Assembly (NCBI GenBank): GCA_024704765.1
Contig: JAKMXF010000222.1
Coordinates: 1,740,400-1,804,399 of the forward strand
Direction: 5' to 3'
Length of the DNA stretch: 64,000 nt
Origin: Oopsacas minuta
Taxonomy: Eukaryota > Animalia > Porifera
Under the pieces are notes generated by a model. The model was not told the origin of the DNA, made no database searches, and saw only the letters and a program-made list of their open reading frames with translations. The position numbers and the translations under genes are program-made. This document shows, in pieces, positions 1-39,600 of this stretch (positions are counted from its first letter, which is position 1; each line of letters begins with the position of its first letter).

Positions 1-358
1 ATTTGAATAGAATACTATTACAGAAATCTATACAGTCATAGTTGCTTTATCTGACCCGCTTATTATGAATCAATTCCCATATTCCCATAGGATTCGCATT
101 AAATTCAGTTCGCTTAACCCTAATAAATTAGTGTTCTGATTCATTACGCTCCTAATTAACACATAGACGTAATCAGCGGATATGAAGTCCCTTTATTATG
201 TACAAGATTTTGGTCCGTGGGGGTTCACAATAGGCGATCCAGTAAGTGTCTCATGTCGTGAAGCGAGGCGACTTAGTATAGTAAGTGAAAAGAATCGAAA
301 TAGTATGTATAATAATAAAATCGACATCAGTGTTAACAATTTTCGCAAATTGATCAAA

Positions 359-1744
359 TTAAATAGTAGGATGAGTAGATTGAGCACTGTCCAGTCGAAA
401 TAAGGTTATGTATCCCGCAGAGTTGGCAGCTAACAAGTACTCTCCTGTGTGGTCAAACGTGACAGAAGATACAAAAGTCTGTGGGATAGGACTGTAGAGA
501 AACCGGTTACATACAGGCACTGAAGACTTCTTATTGTACACATACACTCTGTTATCCTCTGAGCCTACAGCTATCAGTTCAGATGTAGAAGATAGACCTG
601 TAAAGTTTCGGTTATTCTTATGAGACGAATATTCTCCGACACAATCTCCTGCTTCAGACCAGCAGCACACTTTAGAGTCAATCCCTGATGAGATTATGTG
701 CTCGCCACTTAGAGAGACATAGGAGACTGCTTTGTTGTGACGTGATCTTGTGAATTGGAGGATTGGTTTCTTGGAGTTACGTATGTCGTATAGTGTGATT
801 GATCTATCAGCACAGGTTACGCATAGTTCGGTAGGCTTGCGAAATTTAACACAGGTCGTGCTATCTACCATCTTAAGACGCGTGACTACCCACGCCCTAA
901 GAAAATAAAACATGTATCTTCACCATTAGTTGTATCTGTGAGTAGCCCAATAGAGAGCTGTGTTACCTTACATTTTGTGGAATATCCTCCTGTCTATTAT
1001 GGCTGCTGTGCCATCGTGAGAGGCAGAGGCTAAGAGACCAGGTTGTTGTACGTGAGAGTCAATGGACCAAACTTTGCCGGGGAAAGATGCAATTTCTATG
1101 GGGTCCTTCTTGCGAGATTCAATCGCGAAACTCTTCACAATTCCGTCGTAGCAGCCAGCGAATAAATTGTCAGAATCATTTGAGAATATTACACTTGAAA
1201 TCTGAATAAGCAGGAATATGTAAAACACAACAAATGTATATTATGAATTTTCTACTCATAAATAGGTACGAACATTCACCTTAGAATTTGCGTAAACTTG
1301 CCAAAATGCTCGAGGAGGTTCTGGGTGGTTTAATGCCACAGAGTTTGCAAAGTCATACAACATCAAGTATTTATTGATTCCGCCAGTCGCGTATTGAGTG
1401 TTAGAATTGTTGAATGAAATAGAGCTGATAATATCTGAACAACCTTTATAACAGTGAACTTCATCCATGGTTAACGCTGGAGAATCAGGGGAGGGGGCTA
1501 TTTGACAAATTTCAATATGATCAATACCTAAAGAAAAAATAGTAAAAGATAATACTCACAGGAGTTGACTCTACTTCTATTCATTCAATCGAAGTAGAGT
1601 CAACTCCCGTGAGCTTCGAGATACTGGAGTTGAATGTATGTATATATTTAATAGAAACTAACCATCTTCTCCACTGCGATATCTTTTTGGTTGAGAAGAG
1701 TAGTTAGGAGAATTATGCCTCTTCAGGTTCATAGGTTGAGACAT
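359..1744 (-). CDS. COP1-like: COP1-type WD40 beta-propeller protein with no RING or coiled coil, about 365 aa; exons 1744-1663, 1527-1280, 1201-972, 896-359
   Basis: The spliced frame is continuous (1098 nt) with GT-AG introns. Motifs follow the COP1 WD40 domain in order: SDIISSISF (SNIVSSIEF), GINK (GVTKK), KVWSIDS (RCWSVDF), LYDIRNSKKP (YDLRNTKQP), HNKAVSYV (HRKAVSYA), NRNFTGL (EKNFVGL), IAVGSEDN (IACGSENN), AANSAGYI (AANSQGTI). Confidence 0.85.
1555..1638. repeat. 17-bp perfect inverted repeat plus a MITE-end-like remnant in intron 1 of the COP1-like gene
   Basis: GGAGTTGACTCTACTTC (1561-1577) pairs with GAAGTAGAGTCAACTCC (1591-1607). The arms resemble the CAGTCAACTCCCGT terminal repeat of the MITE at 38621-38810. 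Confidence 0.75.
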
Positions 1745-1974
1745 GAGTAATTTTGGATAATTTTTGGGAGATGCTAATTTTGTCAAACAAATTGGAGAAT
1801 AATTAAATTTAAATTTTTGTTGCAATTTTAAATTACTTAATGTGAATGCAGTTCGTATTGAGCAATGCTAAAAAGACATACTACAAGTTTGTAGCAATAT
1901 TCACAGGAATAGCGCACTATCAGTGCCTCAATTCAAAAGTTACTGTAGTGACCAGGTTGTAACCTCTTAAAGAA

Positions 1975-4900
1975 TCAAGAAACAGACTCAGATAAAAGTA
2001 ACTCTAGATGATCCAAGAACTTACTCCTTTCCTCAAGTTTAACCTCTATTATACATGGATCTAGTTGATCAGTGATAGCCTCAGCATCCAACCGCTCGCT
2101 GGTGTATTTAAACGCTCTCCCTAAGTCGTTCTTGTTGTCATCAGATGCGATAGGAGGGAGGCCCAGGAGGAGACAGTATCCCTGTGGATGATAAGAGGGA
2201 GCAGACAGAACAAAGGGTAGATTACGTGATCTTTTGCTAAGTAAGCTCCAGGAGTGTCTAATGAAGAGCGCCAGCCTCCGGAGTACAAGGGGGGTGGAGA
2301 GGAGACGCACTCCTGGAGTAGATTCATCTAAACATGCGTACATAAATGTTCCAAGGCAGATGACAAGCCTACGGTCCATACAGCTCTGTATCTACGGGAA
2401 TATTATACAATACAATCCACATTGTAAAGTTCTTAAACAATCCTGTATTTATAGCTAGTGAGAATAGCAATACACTAATGGATTGGTAGATAATTATATA
2501 ATTACAGTAATACTTACAAATCGTTAACTTCGCATTGATGTTTACAGCAATAAATTAATTAGGATACATGCCGTAACTCTGATAATCACATGGTGGATAT
2601 AGACATGCTCTTAACTAAGAATTCGAAAGAATTGGCAGGCTATTTCTCGCGGAAAGCATGATTAAATTTAAAATACTCCTCTTCTATTATTTGCATTAAA
2701 TTTCGAGATCTATATACTTTTGATTAATATTATAATATATAAAATTGTAAATCATTCACACACATTTTTGCGGTGAATGATTGCATTCTCGTAAAATTCC
2801 TGTCATAATTAAATAAATATTCACTGTAAGTTGTACCTTACCTGAGCGCGCATCAAAGATTGTACAATCTTAGCTTGTTCTATTCCTTGAAGTACTAGGC
2901 GCATGCTATCTCTTGCTAGAGCATCTTGTGCTATCAAAAAGTTATTACTTGAGAAATCAGTTTCTGTAGTAGTGCTAGAAGAGGGAGTTTCGTTCTCAGT
3001 ATTTCGTGTTGATTCAATGAGTGCAGCACAAGCTATGGCCATGTCAGCAGCAGAGAGCTTAGCTCTGTATCCATAAGCAGCATTGAAGGAGCCATAAGTA
3101 AGGTCGGATAGACCATACTTACTAGAAAGCTTCTCAAACAGAGACGGAACTTTCTCCCTCAATTGGAAATCCATAGCAGAGTACTTCTGTTGACTCTCTG
3201 TTATAGGTAGACCCATATCAGCTAGACACTCCAGCATGCGGTCTCTGCCTTTCTGGGTCCAGAGACGGAATCTACACGTAGTGTAGTCTGAACTGATCAT
3301 GCTGTCAAAAAAGGTCCAATGGCGATGAAGACAGAGTTTGAGCTCGTTTGAGAAAGAGAGTCTCAGGCCGTGTTCAGGAGCCCCACTGCTTCCGCTTGCT
3401 CCTCCGCTATCGGTTGAGTCTCTAGAGGACAGAGTAGAGGTGAAATCTATATTATTAAATCTCAATTGTTGTTTGTCTGTCTGTTTGTTTGTCCGTTGTT
3501 AAGGAAAGGATTTACGGTATGCAATTTTGAAATAATCGCCTAACTATGTATTTATCGTGTTTATCAAGGAAGTAAATAGAATTCAATAAAACTTCACTAA
3601 ATATATCGCACATGCTGAATCCGATTTTCACACTTTTGGATTAATCATATGTAAATTTATTGTTGTATGAATATAAAGTAAACAAATTATCCAAATCTCA
3701 AAATATACGTACAGGCTTGCTCTAAACGACTACCCAGGGGTAACTACGCTGAATCCGAATTTCGCAAGTTTCTCATATGTAAATTTGTTGTTGTTTTTAT
3801 GATTATACAGTAAACAAATTGTTGAAATATTAATTTATCAATTCAATTTTGCAATTTTAGACTTTGCTAAATTCTAGGCACGAAGTGCCGAGTTCCATGC
3901 GAACACAAACTTTTCGCAACCCCGCAGCGTGAGCAAGCGAACCGGCTCGTGTATTAGAAAGTTCCAGAATAGTAAACAACTTTTAAAGCTTAGGGTTATT
4001 ATAAAAGAGACGAACAATCATTTAATCAAAATAAGAACTTGCGATAACAAGAGTGATACAGAGAAGCATTCTCGAAGCGATAATTGAAATATCCAAAATG
4101 GTCGTTCTGAAGTATTCTCCGAGGAGATGGAAGATAAGATACTTAATTTCCAATTATGTGAATACTGATATCCAAGGTTGCAACCGAATAGTTAAATATT
4201 CGGTTGCAACCTTGGATTAATCATTCGTATTTAAAAATTAAATCTAAACATCATAGTGCAGTGTAAATTTGCATGTATTAACTACATATCTGCAATAGGA
4301 ATCTACTGCTATACTGCTTTTTAGCTAATTGTACAATGAACTAAATTCGGTAGTTAACTGCAACAGAACCAAAGATACCTGAATTTATTATGTCTAGCTA
4401 CATGATGTTGCAACTGCTGTACTTCTGATACATACTTCTCCTTACCCACACGCTGATGCAAATACTGATCTGTTAGACCTATGATACCCCACCAAAGTAC
4501 CTGAGGACCATCTTTACTCAGTTTCCATGCTGTGTCATACAACACAAGAGAACAACAGGTGTCATAATAGGAGAACTCGTAGTAACGGAATAGCAGATCC
4601 TCTCTCTTGTGTTCCCATTCTCTCCTCTTACGCCTACCAGCTCCTGGACCTCTACGTTGTCTCTTGGTTCTTGGTTCTAACGAATCTTCCTCTACATCTA
4701 GCTCAGAGTCAGAGGGAGCTGAGGAGGAGGATATGGGCTCTGGTTCTCCTCTTTCTTCATTTCGGTTTATCTGAAAAATATAATTAACTTCTTAAACACA
4801 AGAACAGCTGTTACTTTTATTACAAACGGAGAAGATTCAAAAGTGCCAGGTCTCCCAAAAATCATAAAAAATTATCACTTTTACTAGAATGAATACTAAA

Positions 4901-5858
4901 AGTTATCATTTCAACTATCAAGTATGCAACTTATCAATTTCTGAGTTGCTCTATAAACCAATGTTCTCAACCAATTTTATACAATTACTCCTTGATGAAG
5001 TGACATTACATCTGATCCCCCTCGCTAATCCGAACAGCACTATTTCAATTACAAAATATTCTCGTTCTGATTAGTAAAATGCATAGAAACAATACTATAA
5101 GATTTAGAAATTTTCGAAAGTTGTACAAAAGATGACAAGGCTTCGGAGCTTCTAACATGTGTAATAGTATTATGTATTCGTCCGCAGTAGAATTGGATAT
5201 AAGTAGTTCTTTTTGAAATTTTAGAATATTCCAAAGGTTGCATAATTTTAGGCCCTGTTAGGATTAGTGAGGTTATACATTGCGCATATAAGATTCAAAA
5301 AGCCCCAAGCTAGTACACAGAATAGTACTTTTGACTCATAGAAATAATTTCGTTTTGGATAAATAAATGTATCCAGAAACTTCTAGTAAAGTGCCTGGTT
5401 GAGAACTATAACCTATACTACTAATTAGATTATATATAATTACGAGAGCATACTTCATCAAGCTTTGGAATGTTTACTGTATCCCCTTCCCTGATAACTA
5501 TCTTCACTTGGTCAGATCCGTAGACATTGTCTAAATCGAGTGGTCTGTGGCTGTCTATCACGAATATTGGCAAAAGTGGATTTTCTGTGAGTGACAGTGC
5601 TTCCTGAAGAGGTGTTACAGCACCACAATTGATAGTGACAACGGAAGTAGCTTGAGAATGATGTTTCTGGAAAGCATCAGTTAGATCTTGCAATGAGGTG
5701 ACTGGTATCAGTGTGTACATAACTCCATCTGCTTGTAACAGAATTTGTAAGATTTTGCTAGCACACAAACTGTCTACATCGTTTGCAGCTAGGATTAGAA
5801 CTCGGCCCCGTTTCAATACTTGATAGAAATTCTGCTTCAGGTTGTCTGAAATGAGCAT
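1975..5858 (-). CDS. CDC45: Cell division control protein 45 (CMG helicase component), about 597 aa; exons 5858-5454, 4770-4379, 3421-2842, 2391-1975
   Basis: Collinear CDC45 motifs: DVDSLCASKILQ, INCGA, IDSHRP, LWWGIIGLTDQ, LHRHW, FRLWTQKG..L..MGLP, NDLGRAF, IEVKLEERSKFLD. All introns are GT-AG and the total of 1794 nt is in frame. Confidence 0.95.
3446..3949 (+). mobile_element. Non-autonomous Helitron, family A, in CDC45 intron 2
   Basis: A|TCTATATTATTAAATCTCAA 5' end, GTTT/GTCT microsatellite, internal GATTAATCATATG repeats, GC-rich 3' end ...GAGCAAGCGAACCGGCTCG|T; five homologous copies in the window. Confidence 0.8.
4170..4217. repeat. Perfect 21-bp palindrome with a 6-nt loop
   Basis: ATCCAAGGTTGCAACCGAATA-gttaaa-TATTCGGTTGCAACCTTGGAT; a related arm TATTCGGTTGCAACCTTG is at about 40691-40708. 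Confidence 0.85.
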
Positions 5859-6096
5859 CTGTAGCAAACAGAAAAATTCACTTGATTTAGCTATGAATAG
5901 CTATACCATACACGTAGTTCCATTTTACAACATATTTTGTTGAAATTTTATATATTTACCAGACATGTATGTAGTCAGCAGTAGTATATCTTGGAGCATG
6001 TTACTCAATTATCATAGATTAGCTGGAATGATGTAGCAATGCATCATTACTGAAATATTTGAATCAAATTACAAACAGTAAGATATCGGCTCGCTT

Positions 6097-6570
6097 ATGC
6101 GCGACATCTTACCCTCTTAAGTCTTAAAGATGTGCGACGTCCGTCCGTCAGTCCTCCCGCGCAATTGGTGCTCATATATATATACTTTGGGGTGTAGCTT
6201 TACACCTGGGGTATGAATTTTGAATTCACAACCTTTTAGTGATTAATCTTATTTTCACACTTTTCTATGTACATCGGGTTTTTTGCCCCAAAAATGCACA
6301 GAAAAAGAGGTAAAATAACCCGTTTCAAGACTAAACCATTAATTCATTGTATGCTTCGAGGGTTAAATTATTAGTCTTTACGTTCACTCTATGTATAATA
6401 AGTATAATAACTAAATTATCAATGTTTAATCATTTTGGACAATGAAAATTTCACTCAAAATCGGGTAATTTTATCAAATAAGACATTAATATGAGCAAGA
6501 TATAGGCGGCAAAATAACTCGAAAGAAAATAATCAGGGAAACAGTTACAAGGGGTTGGTAAGTATGCATT
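6097..6570 (+). mobile_element. Interspersed repeat family B, Helentron/DINE-like non-autonomous element (boundaries approximate)
   Basis: 5' imperfect inverted repeat (CGACATCTT...AAGATGTGCG), then a GTCC microsatellite and a core GGGGTGTAGCTTTACACCTGGGGTATGAATTT...GTGATTAATC shared with copies near 18.6 kb, 35.2 kb and 50.6 kb. Confidence 0.5.
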
Positions 6571-6574
6571 ATAC

Positions 6575-6622
6575 ACTAGTGAATAATTTTCTTGGGAACA
6601 CTATTCACTGTGACACGGTTGA
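6575..6622 (+). repeat. Short dispersed repeat; an inverted copy lies at about 11074-11128
   Basis: CTAGTGAATAATTTTTCTTGGGAACACTATTCACTGTGACAC closely matches the reverse complement of GTGTCACAGTGAATAGTGTT...CACTAG at 11.1 kb. Confidence 0.6.
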
Positions 6623-6933
6623 AGCGAAATTTTCACAGTTTGTTGGCGTTCGTATCAATGACAGTCCACTGTATATCTAGAGCATAAAGAGAAGATATTG
6701 CAATGTAAACCTTCACTCAAGTGAATAAAAATGGTATTTTATAATAAAAATAATAAACGTAAATACTCTACCTATGTATACATTATTAATTCCTAATCGG
6801 TTTATGCTCATAAAGCAGCAAAGTAATCTACTATTTATCTACAACACACCTTTATCGCACACGTAGTAATAGGAAGTTATACAGGAGCGTAGCAAGCGAG
6901 AGAAGTATATACAACATACAAACTGATATACAG

Positions 6934-9900
6934 CTATACAAGATGGTCCCATACTATCTTCATTGTACCAGGCTTGTCGGTAGGTTGAGTATCAGAATTG
7001 CAAGCATCCAGATTGTTATCTGTTTGATTAGAGTTGTTGGTAGAGACAATCTGCCCTGAAATTTCTTTAGATACAACATTGTCTTCCTCAGGAGCTATAG
7101 GATTAGTACTTACTTGTGAAGTACACGGATTGTCTGGGTAGTAGTCCTCGCTGAATTCATTAAAGTCTATCATGTATGTATTTTTGAGAAAAGGGTTTAC
7201 GCTAGGTCCTGTTACAGTAGCGGGAGCAGGACCGTAGAATAACTTAGTAGCTTCCTCTCTCTGTATTCTCTCTATTATCAGTTTAACCAGTTTACTATCA
7301 TTCTCGTTATCTCCTAGCTCAGTAGCTACATTGAGTGGAGGAGGTATATCTCCTCTCTTATGGTAAATAAGAATATAAGCTTCTTTAGTAGTGTCTGATT
7401 GTCCCTCCGGACTGATAACTTCAACTTTATGATCATTAAAATATCTCCACTCGTGAGTTGTCGGGTGCTTAGTGTAAGCAGTGTAGTGGCCACCGTGTAA
7501 CCCTCCGAAATGACAGACACAGCTGATTAAGTCGTATTCAGGGATATTTACTACTGAGGGTTCTGTGACGTCAGAAGAGAACACATAACTACTAAAATCA
7601 GCTGATGAGAAGGGGAAGTTGACAGGAGCATCTATCTTATCTCCTTGACTACCGTGGAATGCGAATCTCTTCAAATGTACAATCAGTGTTGTAGGGAGCT
7701 CCTTGATGCGGATAAACTTCTCTACTGATTTATTATCTTGACAAGTAGGACAGAACCACATATTCTCTGGACCAAGGATCTCCGATTGAGAGAAAGCGTC
7801 TAAACAGTCTGAAAGGGATAGAGGCTCCCTCCTCTCCTCCACCAGTGACACGTGCTCATTCTTCTGGCCAGCACTCTCAATAACAGAGTCAGGAATATCA
7901 CCAAAATCGACCTAAGTACATTGATAAAGAACTAATGAGGATATAAGTATAATTAATAATTCTTACAAAGATGCGATCTGATGGACGTATGATGACGTCA
8001 CTGAAATCTGCAGCAACTTGTCTGGTGTCCTGTAGATCATCAGTTAGACTAATTTGAAAGCTGTCATTCCTAAGAAATAGAGAAGGACGAGGTAGTTCTG
8101 TTACCCAAGAGAACAGCTGATACCCCTTCAAGTGGTTATCTACCTCCATTAGACAGGGGTGTGAGAATGTTTTGTACTTGTTATGTCTCAGATGATTATC
8201 AGTAGAGTCAGTAGGTAGTAAATGTCTGAATATCACAAATGCGGGTATCCTCTTGGTCTCAGGACAGTATGTCTGTAGCTGAGGATAGGGAATGAATGAG
8301 TCTGTAGTAGTAGCTTCTGAGCATACAGGACATGGTGTATCACCTGATTCAGTCACTCGTGAACAGTTCAGACTAAGACATGTCTCACAGAGGGTACATC
8401 CACAAGTGGGGTGTACCAGGAGATCAGTGTCTTGCATGTCTTCAAGACAGATAGCACAGGAGTGGTAGGATAGAGATGCTGCATTAACAGAGGGATTAGT
8501 CTTGTCTGTTTGTTCAGACGGTACATGTTGCATCTCTGTGGTAGTACTCACTACTCCATTGAGACCAGATGCCAGAGGTTTCTTAAGAGCTGACTCATTA
8601 GCAGGACTAGATACTCTCTCTCCCATCTCTAGACTACTAGATGTAGTAACCTTCAACTCTATAGCGTAGACAGATCTAAAGTCATCTTTTATGTAAGAGA
8701 CAAGCAAGGCATCTTGGAGTAGTCGTTGAGGAGCTTTCCCTCCAACTTCCACTATGGCTACATTTTCAGGTGAAATATCAAGATTAATCAGCTGTAGCAG
8801 AGCTTTCTTAAGGTCTGCAACATTCTGGTTCTTGTATACAGTTACCAGACACTCTGTCACTGAGATTAGAGTCCCGTCAGCTGCTAGAGAATCATTTTTT
8901 GAGTGTACAGGGTTCAAAGGACACCACGTTATCTTGAACTAAAATATGAAGCGTTAATAATATATTATGTATTATATTATAAGGCCACTGTTAGTGAAAA
9001 CTTGTTTCAGCTCCACGGCCCGCATTAAGTTTACCTGATGCATGAATATTGTCATATTTCACAACGAACATATCTTGAAGTAGAGTCATTGAAATTCTTG
9101 CATGAATTGGCCGCTTTGTATTATGAAAACCTCATAAAAATAATCAGATAACGATGATAAAATGGCGCCAAATGGATATCATGTGGAGTATAATCGAAAC
9201 CTGTTTCTCATTATTAACAGGGAATAATACAAGGATTATAACTTACCTGTCTCTCAAACCCCCTGGGGAGAGGAACAGAGAGAAAGAAGAACGGTTCCTC
9301 CAATACAGTCTCATTTCTACACTCACAACAAGTAACTTTTGTAGAGAATTTGCCTTTAAAAGTAGTCTCAACTACAGTATCACCATTAAGTGTAGTATAT
9401 TGCTCTAATCTGGGAGATTTCCTAGAAGGTTCAGTAGAATCAGAGTCATCTCGTAGGCTAGATTGTCTCACTCGTCCTGACCTGAGTACAACATTCATGT
9501 GGTCAAGAAACACACCCATAAACTCCTGACAGTCATGAGCCTTATACCCTCTGAAAGGGTGGAAAGCTTCTCCTAGGAGAGCTTTGAATGCAGTTGGTGT
9601 TAGATACGTGTATTTACCCGACCAGACAGAGCGAGCTAGTTTAGAGTAAACATTGAAAAGTAGAGTGTCAACATGTTCCAGTATCTTGTCCAGATCCTTG
9701 CTGTCAAGTTCTTCTGTTACTCCTGGACAATGCTCTAACACTGATGGAACCACATTAGTGAAATACTCAGTTAGTTGTGGTACACTTAATAGAGCCTGTA
9801 TCCCAGCATTCATGTAGCAGGTGTTCCCTAGGTTACGCAGTCCGCACACTCCAGGATATGCGTTCACATCTTCCAGGAAGGGGGGATCAGATTGTTCAGA

Positions 9901-10077
9901 AAGGAGAACATTCTCTACTCTACCCGTGTCCATTACGGGAGGTTCGTGTAAAATGTCGTGAGCAACTTTTCCAATCTCTTCGTCAGTCATCTGTGGCTTG
10001 AAATCTTCTGGGCTTAGTCCAGGTGCGTAATTGCTCTCATTCCACTCGTTATCTTCGCTTGGAGAGTCCATAGCCAT
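6934..10077 (-). CDS. Ubiquitin-specific protease (peptidase C19, USP4/11/15/19-like catalytic core) with internal Ubl-like and C4C4 RING insert, about 926 aa; exons 10077-9247, 8938-7967, 7911-6934
   Basis: Cys box GLRNLGNTCYMNA, Asp box HDCQEF, Zn ligands CCEC and CPTC, LPTTLIVHLKRF, His box CHFGGLHGGHYTAY, WRYFND. RING CAIC-x14-CGC-x2-CETC-x15-CPVC at 8458-8321. Two GT-AG introns keep the frame (2781 nt). Confidence 0.92.
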
Positions 10078-13000
10078 CACGAGAGTATGGCAAATGTAAT
10101 GTGATGCTAATAAATCTGTAACTAAATAAGAATTGATAAACTTCGAATTCGGATTTTAGTGTTTCCTAAGTTATGATTATATAATTATGGGAACGACGTG
10201 TTCAACTTCGGGATTATTAAATATGGTCGTTTGCCAACATTTAAGCCATAGACGTGATGTTTTAAGAAAGCAGAAAGTAAACTGGAGTGGTGAGGCTCAC
10301 TATTTACGTATCTGAGTTATATACAAACATAAATTCACTTATCCCCATACTGTCCATACATATATCTAGACCTACACAAATAAGTAGAATAGTAATAAAT
10401 GTAAGGTCCTAATCAGAAAATTAGCAATTCTAGTTATCTACTATTCACTACTGTATGCCAATTATATAAATCCTGAGTTGTGTTGTCAATGAACTCGTCG
10501 ATGATATGACATACATACAGGATGCTAACGTCATTGCAGCATCTTCATGAACAGTCAGTACAGAAGTGGTTCAAAAATTCTGTTGAGTTTGTGAGTTCGA
10601 AAGTATGTGTATTCTGCCGCAACATACTGAAGACTCTTAATTAACCTTACATGTCGTCACAGGTAGACCGTAGACACACATATAGCACATAAAACATATT
10701 GAGATTGGGTAGCAGAAACTTCAGTGACTCTTCCTTAGTAAACGCTTTTCTAAGAGTAAAAATCTCTTTACTCATGCATTTATAGAGGAAACCAGTTATT
10801 TCTCGCAAACAAAATTGCAAAAGTTTACTAAGAAATTTATCTCCATTATAGCATTCTGCGAGCGTAGCGTGTCGTCTTCCAAACTTGAATACAACAGGAT
10901 TATTGTATGACATTGGGGTGACTTATTGCTTATTGGCAATTTGTTAATTATAAGCAGGGATGGAAACAGCTAAGCTCACGAAAAATTGTGGCTGTTAATA
11001 GCTATCGCTAAATTTCCATTTCATCCTTATCTCATGCCCGTAGGAGACGGTACGGTTGGTCAGGTTTCAACTGGTGTCACAGTGAATAGTGTTCTCCGTG
11101 AATAATGTTGCCCAAACATTATCCACTAGGGATTATGGTCATGGGCGTAGCAGCAACGGGGATTTTAAGGGGCACAGTCTCTAAATCTATCCAGTTTCCC
11201 ACTATCCCTTAATATAATCAATGTATTGAATAATTTGAGGGGACTATTGATAAATATCTATCCGTGAGATTTGTTTAAGATCCATTGAATTTAGCCAATT
11301 TATTAATTACAATTGATGGCTATACTCTATAGGATATCTACACATCAAAATGACGCAAAGGTGTTCATTTCGTTATGGGGCACTATAATAAATTCAATTT
11401 TCCCCAAAATTTGAGAAGGTAAAATGGGAAGTGAGATTGAAAAATTTTGATGAATAGATTTTACTAAAATTTGATGTCCTCCTCTTATAATGCATCATAA
11501 TAGATTAATTCCTTGGAGGTCAACAACAGCAATACAACATCTATGATGTATGCCTCAGAACGTTGAAGTGTACTACCTAATTTTACTTGGATAAAATCAA
11601 ATGTTTGAATGCTCTCATGGGCTTTGTTTCTAGCCCTCTAAGCGCTATAGTTAAAAAAAGAGCTGCTCCATAACACCAATATTTACATATGTGAAGAGCA
11701 TTAAAGTAGCGGCACTCCATTTTTGAAGGAGTGAACACACTGGAGTGCACTCGGTCAAAACCCTCGAACCCTCCCTTTTCGGCGCCTATGCATGATAACT
11801 GTGCGTTTTACCCGATTAACCAGAGCAATTTAATTATCACTATTCGTATGGTTCTCTTTCCAAATGCAACTGTGGATCTATTAAGCGGAATCTACTAAAA
11901 CATATATGCAGAGCATTAAGCGCTCCTCATTTTTTGGACCGCGCTCTGGTCCGAACTCCCACCTCCGCTCATTACTCAAAAAAGGAGCGCACTCCGGATA
12001 CCAGTCCAGGACAAATGGAACGCACTCCAATCGCGGTCTTTTTATTCTTTCAGATTTACATTAGATTTGTATTTTAAGTAATCAGGATTGAATTGTACAT
12101 TCGGGAAATTATTAAATCGGCAAAGTCAAACCATTTCAATAAATTGTGAATTATACAAAAGTGTCCCAGCATCCACTTTTTATAGCAATAATACTGAATT
12201 TTATGCAAGATAACCCTTGGTCAGATAAAAACTGTGAAAGGAGATTTGATGCTCATTTATCATTTCTTACTATAAATATATTCTTCCATACTAATATTTG
12301 TTAGCGGGTAATTAATTATTGACACTTGTTTGATTAAAATCATCTTTAGATTTTGAATATTGACCTTTCAACCACTCGTTTACGGATAGTTGCGAAATTA
12401 TATTAATTTTAATTCTGTTCTAACTGTTAATCAGAATGAATAATGACCGCGGGAGCTGTTTAAAATCGGATAAAATTAAATTTAACTATTTTTTGATTAA
12501 TCTTATGTATATTTATGAACTATACAATATTTTGTATTGCTTAATACATTTACTGGTAAGTGGTAATTATGAGATGTCTGCTAATTGTATTTCTATATAG
12601 AAATATTCGAATGAGTTTTGACGCGGCCAGTTTACTTAGAAAGACTTAATTTTGTGCATCATGAAACTGTCTAGCAAGTAATTACTCTATTGGATCATAT
12701 GATTTTTGAAAGATACTGGTTATAACTTATGGCAGCTCTAGGCATCAAAGAATTCACTGAAAAATTTCTACTTTCTCATCTTTCTGATAAATCTCATTGA
12801 ATCAGCGTAAAAGCTACCCGAAACTTCATTTAAGATATATTTGAGCATAGTAATTCAATTTGTACTCATTCCGGTGTAAGGCTAAAACAATTATCCAATC
12901 TCTTTCACTTCTTCCATATTTAGGAGATTTTCGAATTATACTAATATTTCGTATGTTGATTTGTAAGTTTATCGGATGTCTGATGAAACATCAAGATTGG

Positions 13001-23020: not shown

Positions 23021-26000
23021 TTAGCAAGCTGTCGTGTCAGTGACTGAGGACGTACTAGGAGGACTTGAGCTATCAGTGGTAGCGGGGAGGATGCAAACCA
23101 TTGAGTTCATTAACGGGTTATAGGTGAGAAGCGGCTGGGTGTATTTTATATCAGGGATTACTACTGTTTGGAAACCGGGGAGATTAAACGAGGGAGCTAG
23201 TATATAGCCTGCTGGTAGACCAGATAGTGAGTTTGATGTGACAGTTGGTATGCTAGTTGTTGTGATAGTAGTCGGGTATACATTGTCAATGACAGTAGAC
23301 TTGGTGTCAGAAGATGAAGACTCTGTTAAAGAAGATTCTGGGAGTTGAGTAGACATCTGGTTAACAGAAGAAGCACAGGAAGAACATTTAGGATTATATT
23401 TAGTATATGACTGTTTGTTTAGAAAGGGTAGAGACTCCAAATTGAATCTGTAAACATAACGCTGTCCTTGTACTTTATACATAATCTTCTTGTCGTAATA
23501 ATAACGAATAGCTCTGCTCAGTTTATCGTAGTTCATATTTGGTTTCCTCTTCCTTTCGCCCCATTTGCGTGATACCTCATCTGGGTTCAATAATTTGAAT
23601 TCTCCATTGTTGCCGGCCCATTTAATGATGTGTGAATTCTTCTCATCATTCAGCAGTTCCAGGAGAAATTGCCATAGCTGCACATGACCTAGAAGCCAAT
23701 ATAATATAAAACTCTAATGAAATGACACAAATGAATTCTAACAATGCAATTAAATCTCTAGTTACGGGAAATAGCAAAGAAATGTGTGATATCGCTAAAA
23801 CGCTAAACTACTAAAATACATATTAGCTACAAGTTGTTAGGAAAGTTATTTTAAGACGAATATATGTAATGAGATTGGAAACATGCTTAATTTTAGATGT
23901 CAGGATAAACTATGAAGTCACAAGTAAATTATGTCTACATATGTCCAAATAAGATGACGATTCATCAACAACTATAAATCATACTAGTACAATAATCATC
24001 GTGTTACGAATATGTAAGCAAAACCCTGTAGAAATAGAGAGATTACGTAGTATAATGGCTACATTTCCGGAAGAACTACAGAACGCGGAGGAAGCAAATC
24101 ATATTTTTAGATTACTCGTAAGAATTCAATTAAGAAATCCGATATTCCTGTGAGACAGAGGAAACGAATGATGTTGACGATCTGAATAATGATTATAACA
24201 ATTAATAGATTTATTCCTAGGAGGATGTGTTCATATAGATAAGCAGCTTAATCAGGACAGATGGCTTCTAACGTATTGCACAACCCAGTTGTGCATTCTT
24301 AATTATTGTCATCGCAATACGTCGCTACAATATAAGCTACTCACCTCCGTTACTAGATGACCATGAATGAATACATTCTCCTGAATCTTCGCTGCTAATG
24401 AGGTTGTTGTAGCTGTTTCTTGTTAGGTTATGACAGCTCTCAGGGGAGTCAGCGTTTGCTCCAGTCTGAGGTGGTGTTGTAGAAATAGGACAGTAGTAAT
24501 ATTCACCAAATTCCTGCTTCACTTCGAGATTATCTGTAGTTGCAGGATCCATAGATTTGATAATTTTAGTGTCAGTAGATTCTGGAGAGTTGTAAGGCAA
24601 GTGAATGTTGAAAGGGGGTGGAGAGGGGTCCTCAGATGTCACGTTAATTTCTACTGAGTAAGGAGTCGGACTAATCCGTTCCCTGGAATCTGATATTGTA
24701 ACAGTATCACTATCACTAGTGTTATTGCTGTTCAATGTCTGCTCGTTGATTGTGGCTATCGAGTGGTGAGGTTGGAAATTGAGAGGAAATGTATTTGAAT
24801 AATGGAAATTTGGTACCTCGATCGGGCAGAAAGTCCCAAGTTTAGGAGTAATGGGCAATTCAAGCTCCTCTATCGGTTCACTCTTAACCTGAATACTGCT
24901 ATCAGATAAGTTACTGTACTCACAGTCCATCGCATTTGTTCCGTCATCTTCTACGGGGGAAGTTAAGTGGGGGAGAGTTGGAGAAGTGTGAGTGGGTAAA
25001 CTACTAATACCTCGTATAAAAGCATCACTGTTATTAGTCATCATAATTTTATCCCGAGACATGCTTGTGTCTAGTACAGATAGTTGTCCTAACTTAGAAA
25101 CTCTGAATTGAGAAATACCAATAAGAGGAGTGTGATGGGAGAGTCTGTGTTTGTGAGAAGGAGATGTTCCGTGTAGTCTTAATCGCTTTTCAGATTTAAA
25201 CTTGTCACCTACAATATAGCATACACTCATAATATATATTTTTAGATGGTTATGTTATCTTTAGTTCGAATTAGTAATCAAATTATAGTGGCAGCTATGG
25301 TTTATATACTTTTCAAATTGTTAAGCTTCATTGAAAAATGTACTAAAATGTCGGAGGTTATAATATGGACTAAAGTTATTTTTATATTCATTTTGAGATA
25401 ATTCTAAGCCATAAAATTAGTTCCTACTTGCTAAGAAATGAAACAAATCATTATTTTGCATCCATCTAAGGGATGTAAAGTATATAAGGTATTCAATGCA
25501 ATTCAACCAGAAAGTCTGCTTACATCAAGCTAATCGTTATTTCTTTGGCTTTTTTAGGAAAGAGGGTCTTCAAAAGTCTCTAATACAATTTGCAAAGGAA
25601 GTTTGAAGTTGAGTGCAAATAATTTAATCGACCATTTGCGTCAAAAGGAAGAATTTAAAATATTTGAAGACATCCTAAAATTAATTAGCATTTTATATGC
25701 CTCAATTTTAAGAAAAATTCTTATATCATTTCTATAAAAGTAAAAATGAGCGACCTAGAAATAATTTCCAGAATACCACAATGATTGATGCCAGATTCTT
25801 TCTGAAAAATTTAATAGAATACGAAAGAATGTTGATAAGTGGCTCCACTCATGTACCCAGAAGTATGTAATGTAAAGAATTCAGATTGACACAGACATGC
25901 CATTCTTTCAGGAGGCCTCCAAAAATATCTCGTGATTAGATATTCAATTTATAAATCTATTGTATGACACTTTCTACAACTAGATACCATACATTAAGTA

Positions 26001-36693: not shown

Positions 36694-39600
36694 CTATTGA
36701 AAGTAAAATCCATGGTTAGGACTAACGACTGAATGGTGAAGAGAAGCCGGAGAGTTTAAAGGACTCAAACTGAAATTAGTTGGAGCTGACTCATTTATTT
36801 GTATTTGGTTATGAACAACTGTAGGAGAAGACGGATAAGCTATAGGGGAGGGAGGATAATGGTTAGGATACGAATAAGGTGTAGGAGAAGGACAGAATAG
36901 AGTTGGAGAGGGGCAAAATGTAGAAGGAGATCCTCGAGAGATGAGATACTCAGGGGTGAATGTAAAAGCTGGTTCAGCTGATATTGAAGAGGGGGGATGT
37001 GAATGTACAGGAGAGTGTACCAGCTCACTCTCTCCTTTCAACTTCAGAATTAACTCCTCAAACGGACACCCAACATGTCTCTGTACATCACATACAAATC
37101 TGTACACATATCTCTTGCCAGGAACTTTATGGATAATATTCTTATCGTAATAGTAACGAAGACCTCTACTTAATTTCTCATAATTCATTTTTGGTTTGTT
37201 TTTCCGTTGTCCCCACTTCTTGGCAACCTCCTCAGGGTTAACTAGTTTGAATTCCCATTCTTTATCGGTCCAGTGAATAAATGATTGACATTTAGAGTCC
37301 AATAAGAGTTCTAGAAGAAACTGCCATAACTGAATGGGGCCGCATCCTACAAAATTGGATATATAATAAACAACAACAAAATAACAAATACTCGTACAAG
37401 CGTTTGCTGGTATATTAAGAATAGTCGCTACCAACGCATCCCTGGCCATAATCCTCCAGTCATTGGGTGCTATGTAGTGGTTGTATTGGCTACATATTAT
37501 TATTGGAGTGCTATGCACCCTGGCACCCATAAGATCATGTCAATGGCAGCTACAAGAGTATATATAGTATGTGTTCTTTATTAATCGTATTCAGATTTAT
37601 TTATATCCTGGGATGGTGATCGCGATCGGATCTAGAACGCTGTGTTCAAATTTCTCATCAAAACATGACACAATGGACAAGTATAATATCACTGGACCAA
37701 CACGAATCCTCGATCCTAATACAACACGAAGTTGTTGTTTGTGGTGTATTTCGCTCACCTCTAATCGGATAAATAGTACGAAAGTTACGACACAATTGGA
37801 GCATTGACTGTATTGAGTTGTAAATATGTGTCAACCTCATAGATAAGGATATAACTAAATTATATAATGTAGTTGGTAGAGGGCTATATAGTCATATGGA
37901 TAAACGTACGTACATGGAAACTGAAAGTCATTCACTAATTGACCAAAACTTATGCCTCCAACTATAGAAAAATATGCCAATAAAAAGTCAATCAGCTGGT
38001 TAGATTCAAACAGTGTATCTCGACCTTTTTCGAACTGCGGAAAACTAATTATACCAAAAATTTTTAAACCATAAATGTCAAGTGTGAATCAACTTTAGTA
38101 ATACCGCTGTAAACAAATTTGCCAGTGACTTTTGGGAATAATTAGTAACAAAGTTCTGAGGCACACTGGTTGAGAACCTATGGTAGGATTATAATACTTT
38201 ACCTGTAGGAGAAGAATGCGGATTGAGAAGATGTAGAGTTGGAGAGGGACAAGGAGAGTGGTGCGGAGAAGCCTGTGGGGACTGCCCAGGGGTAGAAAGA
38301 GGAGTTGAGATAGGGCTCGGAGTCATTGGCGGACCACACATTTCCTGACCTGGTATATGATTGAGGCCTGTGAGATGATAGAATAATTAAACAATTAGAA
38401 TTTATTAAATTTGAAATAACTTGAGTACAATTTAAAAATAGATTCTGTCTTGCAGGATGGTTAACAACAAATCTATCTGGATGCAGGAGATTGTCTTGAG
38501 TTAATTTTGGGTGTAGATTAGGTGAGTGTGGAGGTTCATTGTTGTCAGAGATAACCAGTGTAGGAGCTATAGAGAATAATTATTGGTAATCATAACTCCT
38601 CACAGAGTAAGGAATAAATACAATCAACTTCCGTTGTATCTAAACTTAAGGGACAACGAATTGTACTCCGATACAACCGGAGTTCGATATAAGCGAGCGT
38701 AATATTATTATACTTAAGTACGTTGTAGCTAGGTACCATTTACCCAATTTTAAATTCTATATCAGAGGGAATTCGTATCTATCTCTGTTCGATAGAACGG
38801 GAGTTGACTGTACTATACTCAATCGAGTCAATTTTGAAATATTGTCCATGGCCTGCGGCTGATTAACTCATTTATTGATTAGTCCCGATTTAGCGGAGCT
38901 ATTTAACTAATGTCTAGTGCTGTCCTTTCCTTTATCTATATTTATCAGGTGATATGAGTAACCAGTGGACCGATTAAGCAGAGCAGGTTGTAACTAATAT
39001 AGTAAACATACGTGTTATCATGTTTGATCCAGGATTAGTCATATTCATAACATTCTCAGAGTGCCGGAGGAGGCTTGACCAATCATTTCGTGGAATAGTG
39101 TCAGTTGTTTTGTCTAAATATTATTAATTAATTAATAATAGAAAATATATCAACACATGTATTTATGTTGTCAATTAAGTTGTATTAACATATTTGAAAT
39201 AATAATTTGCTGAATCGAAATTTCAGTCATTTGAGTTAGCCACATATAAATAACACAGTATACTATCATTAATATAAACACGGGTAAGCTAAAACTCAGA
39301 CTAATGAGCACAAATTACGATGGGTCATTGTTATTGTTCTTAATAGTTCGCTATATCTTATGAAAATCTCGCAAATATTGAGCAGTGTCTTGTATGATGT
39401 ATGACGTTAAGTATTCAACGTGTTCTATAATGAACTAACATTTCTTCTTAAAAAACTGTAGTAACTGGTACATTATCTGCCATCTAGCAGCAGAATCTGG
39501 ACCTAGGAGATCAAGTAGCTGGTGACCTTCTAGATGACAGAGTCGTGCTCCGTCGAAGTTAGCGAACCTCTTAATATCTGAATTGAGATTGAATTTCTGA

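Follow-up and report, generated by a model that had tools for sequence, protein, structure and literature searches.

A RING-less, WD40-only COP1-type protein encoded next to CDC45 in the glass sponge Oopsacas minuta

The locus and the WD40 gene

The DNA analyzed here is a stretch of 64,000 nucleotides from Oopsacas minuta (contig JAKMXF010000222.1, positions 1,740,400 to 1,804,399), referred to below as the window. Close to its first letter lies a gene for a WD40 protein, with CDC45 as the upstream neighbor. The product is clearly predicted, from sequence and model, to be a short disordered tail and then a COP1/SPA/RUP-family WD40 propeller with its full set of seven blades. The gene is on the minus strand and has four exons, with its ATG at 1744, its stop codon TAA at 361-359 and a product of 365 amino acids (aa). 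The three introns are all GT..AG, and their phases are consistent. The parts of the locus are the following.

1975..2379, minus strand: last coding exon of CDC45, the upstream neighbor; an open reading frame (ORF) with its stop codon at 1977-1975; outside the WD40 gene, it sets the upstream limit of that gene
1663..1744, minus strand: exon 1; ATG at 1744-1742; residues 1-27 and the first base of codon 28; disordered tail starting MSQP; from the translation and the X4 joint
1528..1662, minus strand: intron 1; 135 nt, GT..AG; X4 joint 1525/1661, which with the cut moved by +2 becomes 1527/1663
1280..1527, minus strand: exon 2; residues 28-110; closing strand and first propeller blade; K110 (1282-1280) is the last codon of the exon
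1202..1279, minus strand: intron 2; 78 nt; joint 1201/1280 in X4 contig record 26
972..1201, minus strand: exon 3; residues 111-187; Y128 at 1150-1148, ASFPG (at the position of human QEHE(K)) at 1090-1076, W155 at 1069-1067
897..971, minus strand: intron 3; 75 nt; joint 895/971 (cut +1) in X4 contig record 26
359..896, minus strand: exon 4; residues 187 (last base) to 365 and the stop codon; R218 at 805-803, YDIR at 790-779, F285 at 604-602
327..358, minus strand: short 3' untranslated stretch; X4 contig record 25 begins at 327, and X4 depth is zero in 1-200

Contigs from four runs of one sample and study (X1 to X4) were compared with this model. None of the runs is recorded as RNA; X4 was treated as RNA owing to its spliced contigs. 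These contigs skip exactly the three introns (joints 895/971, 1201/1280 and 1525/1661), and the joints read CT..AC on the plus strand, which is GT..AG in the direction of the gene. The CDC45 introns, too, are without X4 depth, and X1-X3 are unspliced and collinear with the genome. Because its contigs are spliced, X4 behaves as RNA, and the WD40 gene is therefore transcribed and spliced as modeled.

The modeled product is letter for letter the NCBI/UniRef record P0198, "WD40 repeat-like protein [Oopsacas minuta]" (365 aa). The exon 4 word-index protein search had a reach limited to proteins of at most 311 aa, and P0198 was reached through a query with a 224-aa ORF of a paralogue; the full-length word-index query matched P0198 itself and one fragment only. 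The initial annotation of this DNA had proposed the 365-aa model with its ATG at 1744, about 230 bp from the CDC45 stop codon. The splice joints and the identity to P0198 bear out the model, and the distance from the stop codon (1977-1975) to the ATG is 230 bp. The WD40 gene is expressed and correctly modeled.

Propeller family and predicted structure

Full-length protein comparisons used the record P0198, and exons were otherwise searched singly. In phmmer searches of the PDB, the full protein matched human COP1 at an E value of 2.1e-32, Arabidopsis COP1 (AtCOP1) at 2.4e-31 and RUP2 at 7.8e-26, and the next family followed at 5.8e-14. Exon 4 alone matched COP1 at 5e-22, versus 7e-15 for WDR5. 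An AlphaFold2 (AF2) model built from a 54-row alignment had a pLDDT of 88 and a pTM of 0.84, with 29 strands in residues 46-357. In Foldseek, ranks 1-30 were all COP1 or RUP2 chains, with a target template modeling (TM) score of ~0.9 and a root mean square deviation of 1.5-2.5 Å; WDR5 came next. The structural neighbors in the ESM Atlas were RFWD2 (COP1), COP1 and SPA. Membership in the COP1/SPA/RUP family, as first proposed, is upheld by the phmmer and Foldseek results.

Among 1.84 billion proteins, the best nonrepetitive single-stretch matches were annotated RFWD2/COP1. The named best matches were COP1/RFWD2 of fungi, choanoflagellates, algae and vertebrates, and these bear RINGs. The closest relative in the same set was a 173-aa ORF with 67% identity from an ENA assembly (locus L001, below).

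Absence of the RING and the coiled coil

Two features of the COP1 architecture are absent from the WD40 protein, namely, the N-terminal C3HC4 RING and the dimerizing coiled coil. In the WD40 protein, 45 residues precede the propeller. In the AF2 model, residues 1-36 are predicted to be disordered, the propeller occupies 46-357, and no helix of at least four residues is present ahead of it. This agrees with the initial description of a low-complexity N terminus leading into a COP1-type propeller.

The gene was compared with eight related loci: four orthologues (L001, L002, L005 and L007), three loci of a paralogue termed type B (L003, L004 and L008) and one separate locus (L006). The MSQP start is common to the window, L001, L005 and L007, representing four glass-sponge assemblies. 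In L001 an in-frame TGA stands two codons before the ATG, and in L005 an in-frame TAA stands three codons before it, which rules out the joining of an upstream coding exon in these two loci. The window contains no ATG in 1745-1866. A regular-expression search for a C3HC4 RING in all frames of window positions 1-12000 and the eight loci gave no uninterrupted match. Likewise, tblastn with 12 COP1 N-terminal regions, coiled-coil regions included, found nothing COP1-like in the whole 64-kb window or the eight loci, and a propeller control query matched every locus. The conserved MSQP start, the upstream in-frame stops and the absence of COP1 N-terminal homology from the window and the eight loci together indicate that the RING-less, coil-less architecture, as initially annotated, is genuine. 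RING exons spliced in from further upstream had been named as the finding that would speak against it; no such joint is among the X4 joints listed, and the searches found no COP1 RING in the window.

The sole tblastn match of the COP1 N termini was to a RING at 8288-8458 on the minus strand (E value, 0.015). It was considered as the missing COP1 exon and rejected, as it belongs to a separate deubiquitinase gene two genes upstream.

The disordered tail contains one recognizable motif.

1676..1723, minus strand: bipartite-type nuclear localization signal (NLS)-like motif, codons 8-23, KRHNSPNYSSQPKRYR; two basic clusters separated by 10 residues

The KR-x10-KRYR of the tail fits the classical bipartite NLS consensus. 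The first exons of the orthologues begin with the same M-S-Q-P and have two similar basic clusters (KR..KRRH in L001 and L005, RKRK..SPKRQ in L007), and the first exon of the paralogue is also basic (MAKRQR..NKRS). The pattern suggests that the tail carries a bipartite-type nuclear localization signal. In L007, the first exon of the WD40 gene starts with repeated MSQPMSQPMSEPMNEPMSQP.

Orthologous loci, paralogue and selection

The window-type gene (type A) lies in the order CDC45, WD40, TUG-UBX, porin. L001 keeps the order deubiquitinase, CDC45, WD40, TUG-UBX, porin, and the deubiquitinase-CDC45-WD40 part of it is kept in both L001 and L002. The syntenic genes in L001, L002, L005 and L007 carry the CDC45 domain PF02724, and the boundaries of exons 2-4 are the same in these four loci. 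In L007, the most distant orthologous locus, CDC45 and the WD40 gene are separated by inserted ORFs that look transposase-like (4550-4952, minus strand).

Matches with 45-53% identity fell into two groups, one being the distant orthologue L007 with its CDC45 synteny and the other the second locus (L003, L004 and L008). The order at the type-B locus is anillin/PH, peroxiredoxin, WD40, MATH/TRAF, CAP-Gly. The type-B gene has the four-exon layout of type A and keeps HEKRVWSID and CADH. It fits into the ~1.4-2.1 kb between the peroxiredoxin stop codon and its own stop codon and is therefore also RING-less. Types A and B co-occur in one assembly in two cases (ERZ25072730 and ERZ20067936).

A maximum-likelihood tree of the exon 4 region (50 rows, 185 columns) united all nine sponge rows in a single clade (support, 100/99; stem branch, 0.95). 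Types A and B were each monophyletic. One polytomy gives rise to both the sponge clade and the RUP-like rows, with the bootstrap not settled. The phylogeny called for by the initial annotation thus gave a single sponge clade, and the attachment of that clade inside the COP1 family is not settled by it. The ratio of nonsynonymous to synonymous change (dN/dS; Nei-Gojobori, exon 4) was ~0.2 for type A (L001 versus L005; dS, 0.69) and 0.02-0.06 for type B, for which dS is high. Both paralogues are under purifying selection, and the window gene is the faster-evolving and more derived of the two, clearly constrained nonetheless. The truncation probably predates the duplication into types A and B. 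The RING-less design is a feature of the lineage and not a modeling artifact, because it is found in four orthologous loci and in a second RING-less paralogue, with purifying selection.

A further WD40-only COP1-like protein of 356 aa (P0135/P0165) is encoded without introns at L006 (480-1550) and is 44% identical to exon 4. The gene lies on a very compact eukaryotic contig with 30-bp spacers and adjoins a Ctf4/WDHD1-like gene. It is a RING-less COP1 relative outside plants.

The VP pocket

The pocket by which COP1 holds VP motifs was mapped onto the protein in Arabidopsis numbering; an offset of 345 places its K, Y, W, H and F at 422, 441, 467, 528 and 595. The corresponding residues are the following.

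1282-1280, minus strand: K110, context ANSK, equivalent to AtCOP1 K422
1150-1148, minus strand: Y128, context GCYDG, equivalent to AtCOP1 Y441
1069-1067, minus strand: W155, context VWSID, equivalent to AtCOP1 W467
805-803, minus strand: R218, context CADRS, equivalent to AtCOP1 H528; basic, not His
604-602, minus strand: F285, context RNFTGL, equivalent to AtCOP1 F595

Four of the five pocket residues are kept (K110, Y128, W155 and F285), and the K, Y, W and F are invariant in all orthologues and paralogues examined. Retention of the pocket had been proposed initially. The tryptophan of WSID and the phenylalanine of NFTGL were correctly named, and the lysine is K110 in ANSK rather than the one in GINK, which aligns with an Arg in Arabidopsis SRCIK. 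In Arabidopsis, the VP core is held by W467 and F595 and the anchor residue by K422 and Y441, with H528 forming a salt bridge to Glu45 of HY5; mutations of W467 and Y441 specifically hit VP binding (Lau et al., PMC6745501). Since the four residues are invariant, binding of VP-type motifs is most likely kept, with linear motifs of this type predicted to bind on the top face of the propeller.

DET1 contacts and the DDB1-type box

Human COP1 docks on DET1 via its WD40 domain; Glu511, which lies in the QEHE loop, is indispensable, and V686-D688 make a further contact (PMC11864197, PMC12808801). Mutation of E511 abolished DET1 retention (PMC11864197). The human WD40 domain alone binds DET1, and the RING and coiled coil were unresolved in the dimeric complex (PMC12808801), in which the coiled-coil dimer fills two DET1 sites (PMC12808801, PMC11864197). 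In the sponge protein, the contact loop QEHE (510-513) is replaced by ASFP, so that the E511 position is Ser here; it is Trp in the paralogue, and nearly all aligned canonical COP1 sequences have Glu or Asp there. The loop holding human VLD686 (686-688) is deleted in both the WD40 protein and the paralogue. With these loops replaced or deleted, human-style docking on DET1 is probably absent, and the protein is probably not incorporated into CRL4-DET1 as human COP1 is.

The YDIR box, which had been read as a DDB1-binding type, was mapped correctly (residues 223-226) and is kept only as well as in canonical COP1; it is not diagnostic. The surrounding LCVTCADRSITLYDIR and the human LAFGCADHCVHYYDLR match the 16-residue DWD pattern to a similar degree. 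The AF2 model has no helix in residues 1-45, and thus no candidate for an N-terminal H-box of the kind that inserts into DDB1. The suggestion that the protein works only through CRL4 gains no support, given the replaced QEHE, the deleted VLD686 loop and the lack of a predicted H-box helix.

Noncoding blocks, intronic hairpin and neighboring ETS exons

Two conserved blocks and a hairpin lie in the noncoding parts of the locus.

1946..1960, minus strand: conserved 15-mer acaacctggtcacta just past the CDC45 stop codon; identical in L001, L002 and L005
1841..1876, minus strand: conserved noncoding block tctttttagcattgctcaatacgaactgcattc upstream of the ATG; acceptor-like, with a TAG in frame with the ATG; aligned in L001 and L002 and also in L005; unique in the window
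L001 8338-8352 and 8411-8445, L005 5902-5916 and 5969-6000: counterparts of the two blocks
~1551-1618: near-perfect 24-bp hairpin in intron 1; folding energy, -45.4 kcal/mol; z score, -6.65; arms unique in the window

The two blocks between the CDC45 stop codon and the WD40 start are nearly identical across assemblies, while the proteins are only ~67% identical. Possible roles are those of a promoter element, a 3' signal of CDC45 or an acceptor for trans-splicing, and the second block contains an acceptor-like tctttttag. Spliced leaders have been reported in Aphrocallistes (PMC10282587).

The hairpin is absent from the orthologous 60-nt intron of L001. An Rfam scan of 300-2100 returned only subthreshold look-alikes of hairpins and microRNA precursors. 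The hairpin may have come from a palindromic insertion, or it may be an intronic hairpin RNA specific to the lineage. In a CDC45 intron, positions 3440-3880 are a high-copy repeat, where contig depth is hundreds to thousands of times that of the flanks in all four runs and the contigs have many loose ends and internal joints.

The window also contains two ETS-domain exons on the minus strand, at 23024-23713 and 36697-37539. In mammals, COP1 has ETS factors among its substrates. A scan for acidic-VP-acidic motifs in the ORFs of the ETS region (22-42 kb) found none, a result that is uninformative since the motif is loose and the exons are unmodeled.

Proposed role and alternative explanations

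We consider it probable, with some reserve, that the protein is a ligase-independent, stand-alone nuclear reader of VP motifs or a competitor for them. Lacking the RING, it would recruit no E2 itself, and lacking the coiled coil, it would form no COP1-type dimer. The basic tail would direct nuclear import via KR-x10-KRYR, and the propeller would bind VP-type motifs with the pocket residues K110, Y128, W155 and F285. Degrons bound in this way might be occupied or shielded, as plant RUP1/2 occupy UVR8, or passed to a partner.

Several observations weigh against this role. The fifth pocket residue, at AtCOP1 H528, is Arg in the window protein and Lys in L001. Several WD signatures are eroded (HEKR to FPGK, and the end of blade 3 from SDD..W to SHD..ID), and the protein changes 3-10 times as fast as the paralogue; the surface may therefore be retuned to other ligands. 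VP binding itself is predicted from four conserved residues and a modeled fold. The DET1 argument is based on human contacts, and a sponge DET1 could have coevolved. At the 5' end, the window has 41 codons of open frame before the ATG, reaching back to the acceptor-like TAG in the conserved block, and the true 5' end lies beyond what RNA contigs can show.

The main rival is that the protein serves as a CRL4 substrate receptor, its propeller sitting on DDB1 or DET1 and delivering VP-motif proteins to CUL4-RBX1, so that the RING would have been lost in favor of a cullin-only route. Plant RUPs have been reported as CUL4-DDB1 receptors, and the WDxR-like YDIR is kept as well as in canonical COP1; both count for this explanation, as does the binding of DET1 by the human WD40 domain alone. 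We regard it as unlikely, however, given the Ser (Trp in the paralogue) at the Glu511 position whose mutation abolishes DET1 retention, the deleted VLD686 loop and the lack of a predicted H-box helix. The arrangement of a coiled-coil dimer on two DET1 sites, as in humans, is moreover impossible for the WD40 protein. Less probable again is a retuned propeller, i.e., a COP1-derived fold whose face recognizes a non-VP ligand and in which the pocket residues are mainly structural. The long stem of the sponge clade, a dN/dS above that of the paralogue, the loss of HEKR and H528 in the window-type paralogue only, and the lack of acidic-VP-acidic motifs in the ORFs of the neighboring ETS genes all point that way. 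Nevertheless, the pocket K, Y, W and F are invariant despite an overall identity of 45-50%, and two of the equivalent Arabidopsis residues, W467 and Y441, are those at which mutation specifically hits VP binding.

The remaining explanations deny either the gene model or the function of the gene. An incomplete model, in which RING and coiled-coil exons are spliced in from within or beyond CDC45, would draw on the open frame that extends to the conserved tttttag and on the inability of contigs to reveal the 5' end; the contigs cannot fix the true 3' end either. It is largely refuted and now very improbable: stops stand two to three codons before the conserved ATG in L001 and L005, COP1 N-terminal homology is nowhere in the 64 kb or the eight loci, and the NCBI model is the same 365 aa. 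The X4 contigs agree. None of the joints listed leads into exon 1, which is supporting evidence only, as contigs cannot prove a 5' end. By depth arithmetic (bin means taken as depth times covered length, verified on contig 25), the exon 1 RNA contig ends ~12 nt upstream of the ATG, and the CDC45 RNA contigs end near 1931, leaving ~1756-1930 without an RNA contig. A decaying, functionless COP1 remnant would account for the loss of two of three domains and for the eroded WD signatures. It is disfavored to the point of being scarcely credible, since the ORF and the intron positions are intact in four assemblies, dN/dS is ~0.2, the gene is expressed and spliced, and the AF2 propeller is confident.

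Significance

COP1 has been studied as a RING-coiled-coil-WD40 ligase, in light signaling in plants and with ETS, c-Jun, C/EBP and Tribbles in mammals. To our knowledge, WD40-only COP1 relatives were known only from plants (RUP1/2). We found no paper on COP1 in sponges, and the database name of the gene is a generic one. A conserved, expressed and selected WD40-only COP1 pair in an early-branching animal class indicates that the degron reader can persist alone in animals; in the glass-sponge lineage, the recognition module of COP1 has been separated from the enzyme, in two sister genes. These small, intron-poor proteins are suited to asking which COP1 functions reside in the propeller alone and whether VP-degron recognition in its present form predates the animal-plant split.

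A broader scenario, which we put forward tentatively and with less than even confidence, is that a RING-bearing COP1 is absent from the entire glass-sponge class, the ancestral ligase having been cut down to NLS and propeller and then duplicated. If so, COP1 degron recognition in this class would be run by two ligase-dead readers. Animals would then have their own counterpart, independently evolved, to the solution seen in plant RUPs, and the class would serve as a natural experiment on what the propeller does without RING, coiled coil and DET1 docking.

Comparison with known systems

The type-B paralogue is one of the closest known systems. It too is RING-less, shares with the window type the four-exon layout, the basic first exon, the pocket residues and the deleted loop, and is its sister in the tree (100/99). 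It differs in its locus (peroxiredoxin, WD40, MATH/TRAF), in keeping HEKRVWSID and CADH, in evolving 3-10 times more slowly and in having a longer segment before the propeller.

With COP1/RFWD2 (human Q8NHY2 and Arabidopsis; 5HQG, 5IGQ, 5IGO, 6QTO, 9LTR), the sponge protein shares the seven-blade fold (TM score, ~0.9) at 28-29% identity, the pocket K, Y, W and F, the YD[IL]R, KAVSYV, GSEDN and LAANS signatures and a basic cluster before the propeller. In contrast to COP1, it has no RING, coiled coil or G/S-rich N terminus and comprises 365 aa rather than ~675-731; QEHE is changed to ASFP, the VLD686 loop is deleted, and AtCOP1 H528 is replaced by Arg. Judged by its sequence, it cannot have E3 activity or dimerize by the COP1 mechanism.

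The DCAF/DWD receptors of CUL4-DDB1 resemble it as WD40 propellers with a WDxR-like motif. They differ in that the sponge protein has no predicted N-terminal helix-loop-helix (H-box), and its motif is no better than that in COP1, which itself reaches CRL4 through DET1.

Plant RUP1/RUP2 (8GQE) are similar to the sponge protein in being WD40-only, in size (~370-385 aa) and in belonging to the same propeller family (phmmer E value, 7.8e-26), and a Prunus RUP2-like sequence also has Arg at the H528 position. The tree does not show them to be orthologous, since the sponge rows do not group with the RUP-like rows (polytomy). The sponge score is nearer to COP1 than to RUP2, and the UVR8 context is absent in animals. 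Convergence with the plant RUPs, proposed initially, is plausible, with the sponge clade attached to the tree at that polytomy.

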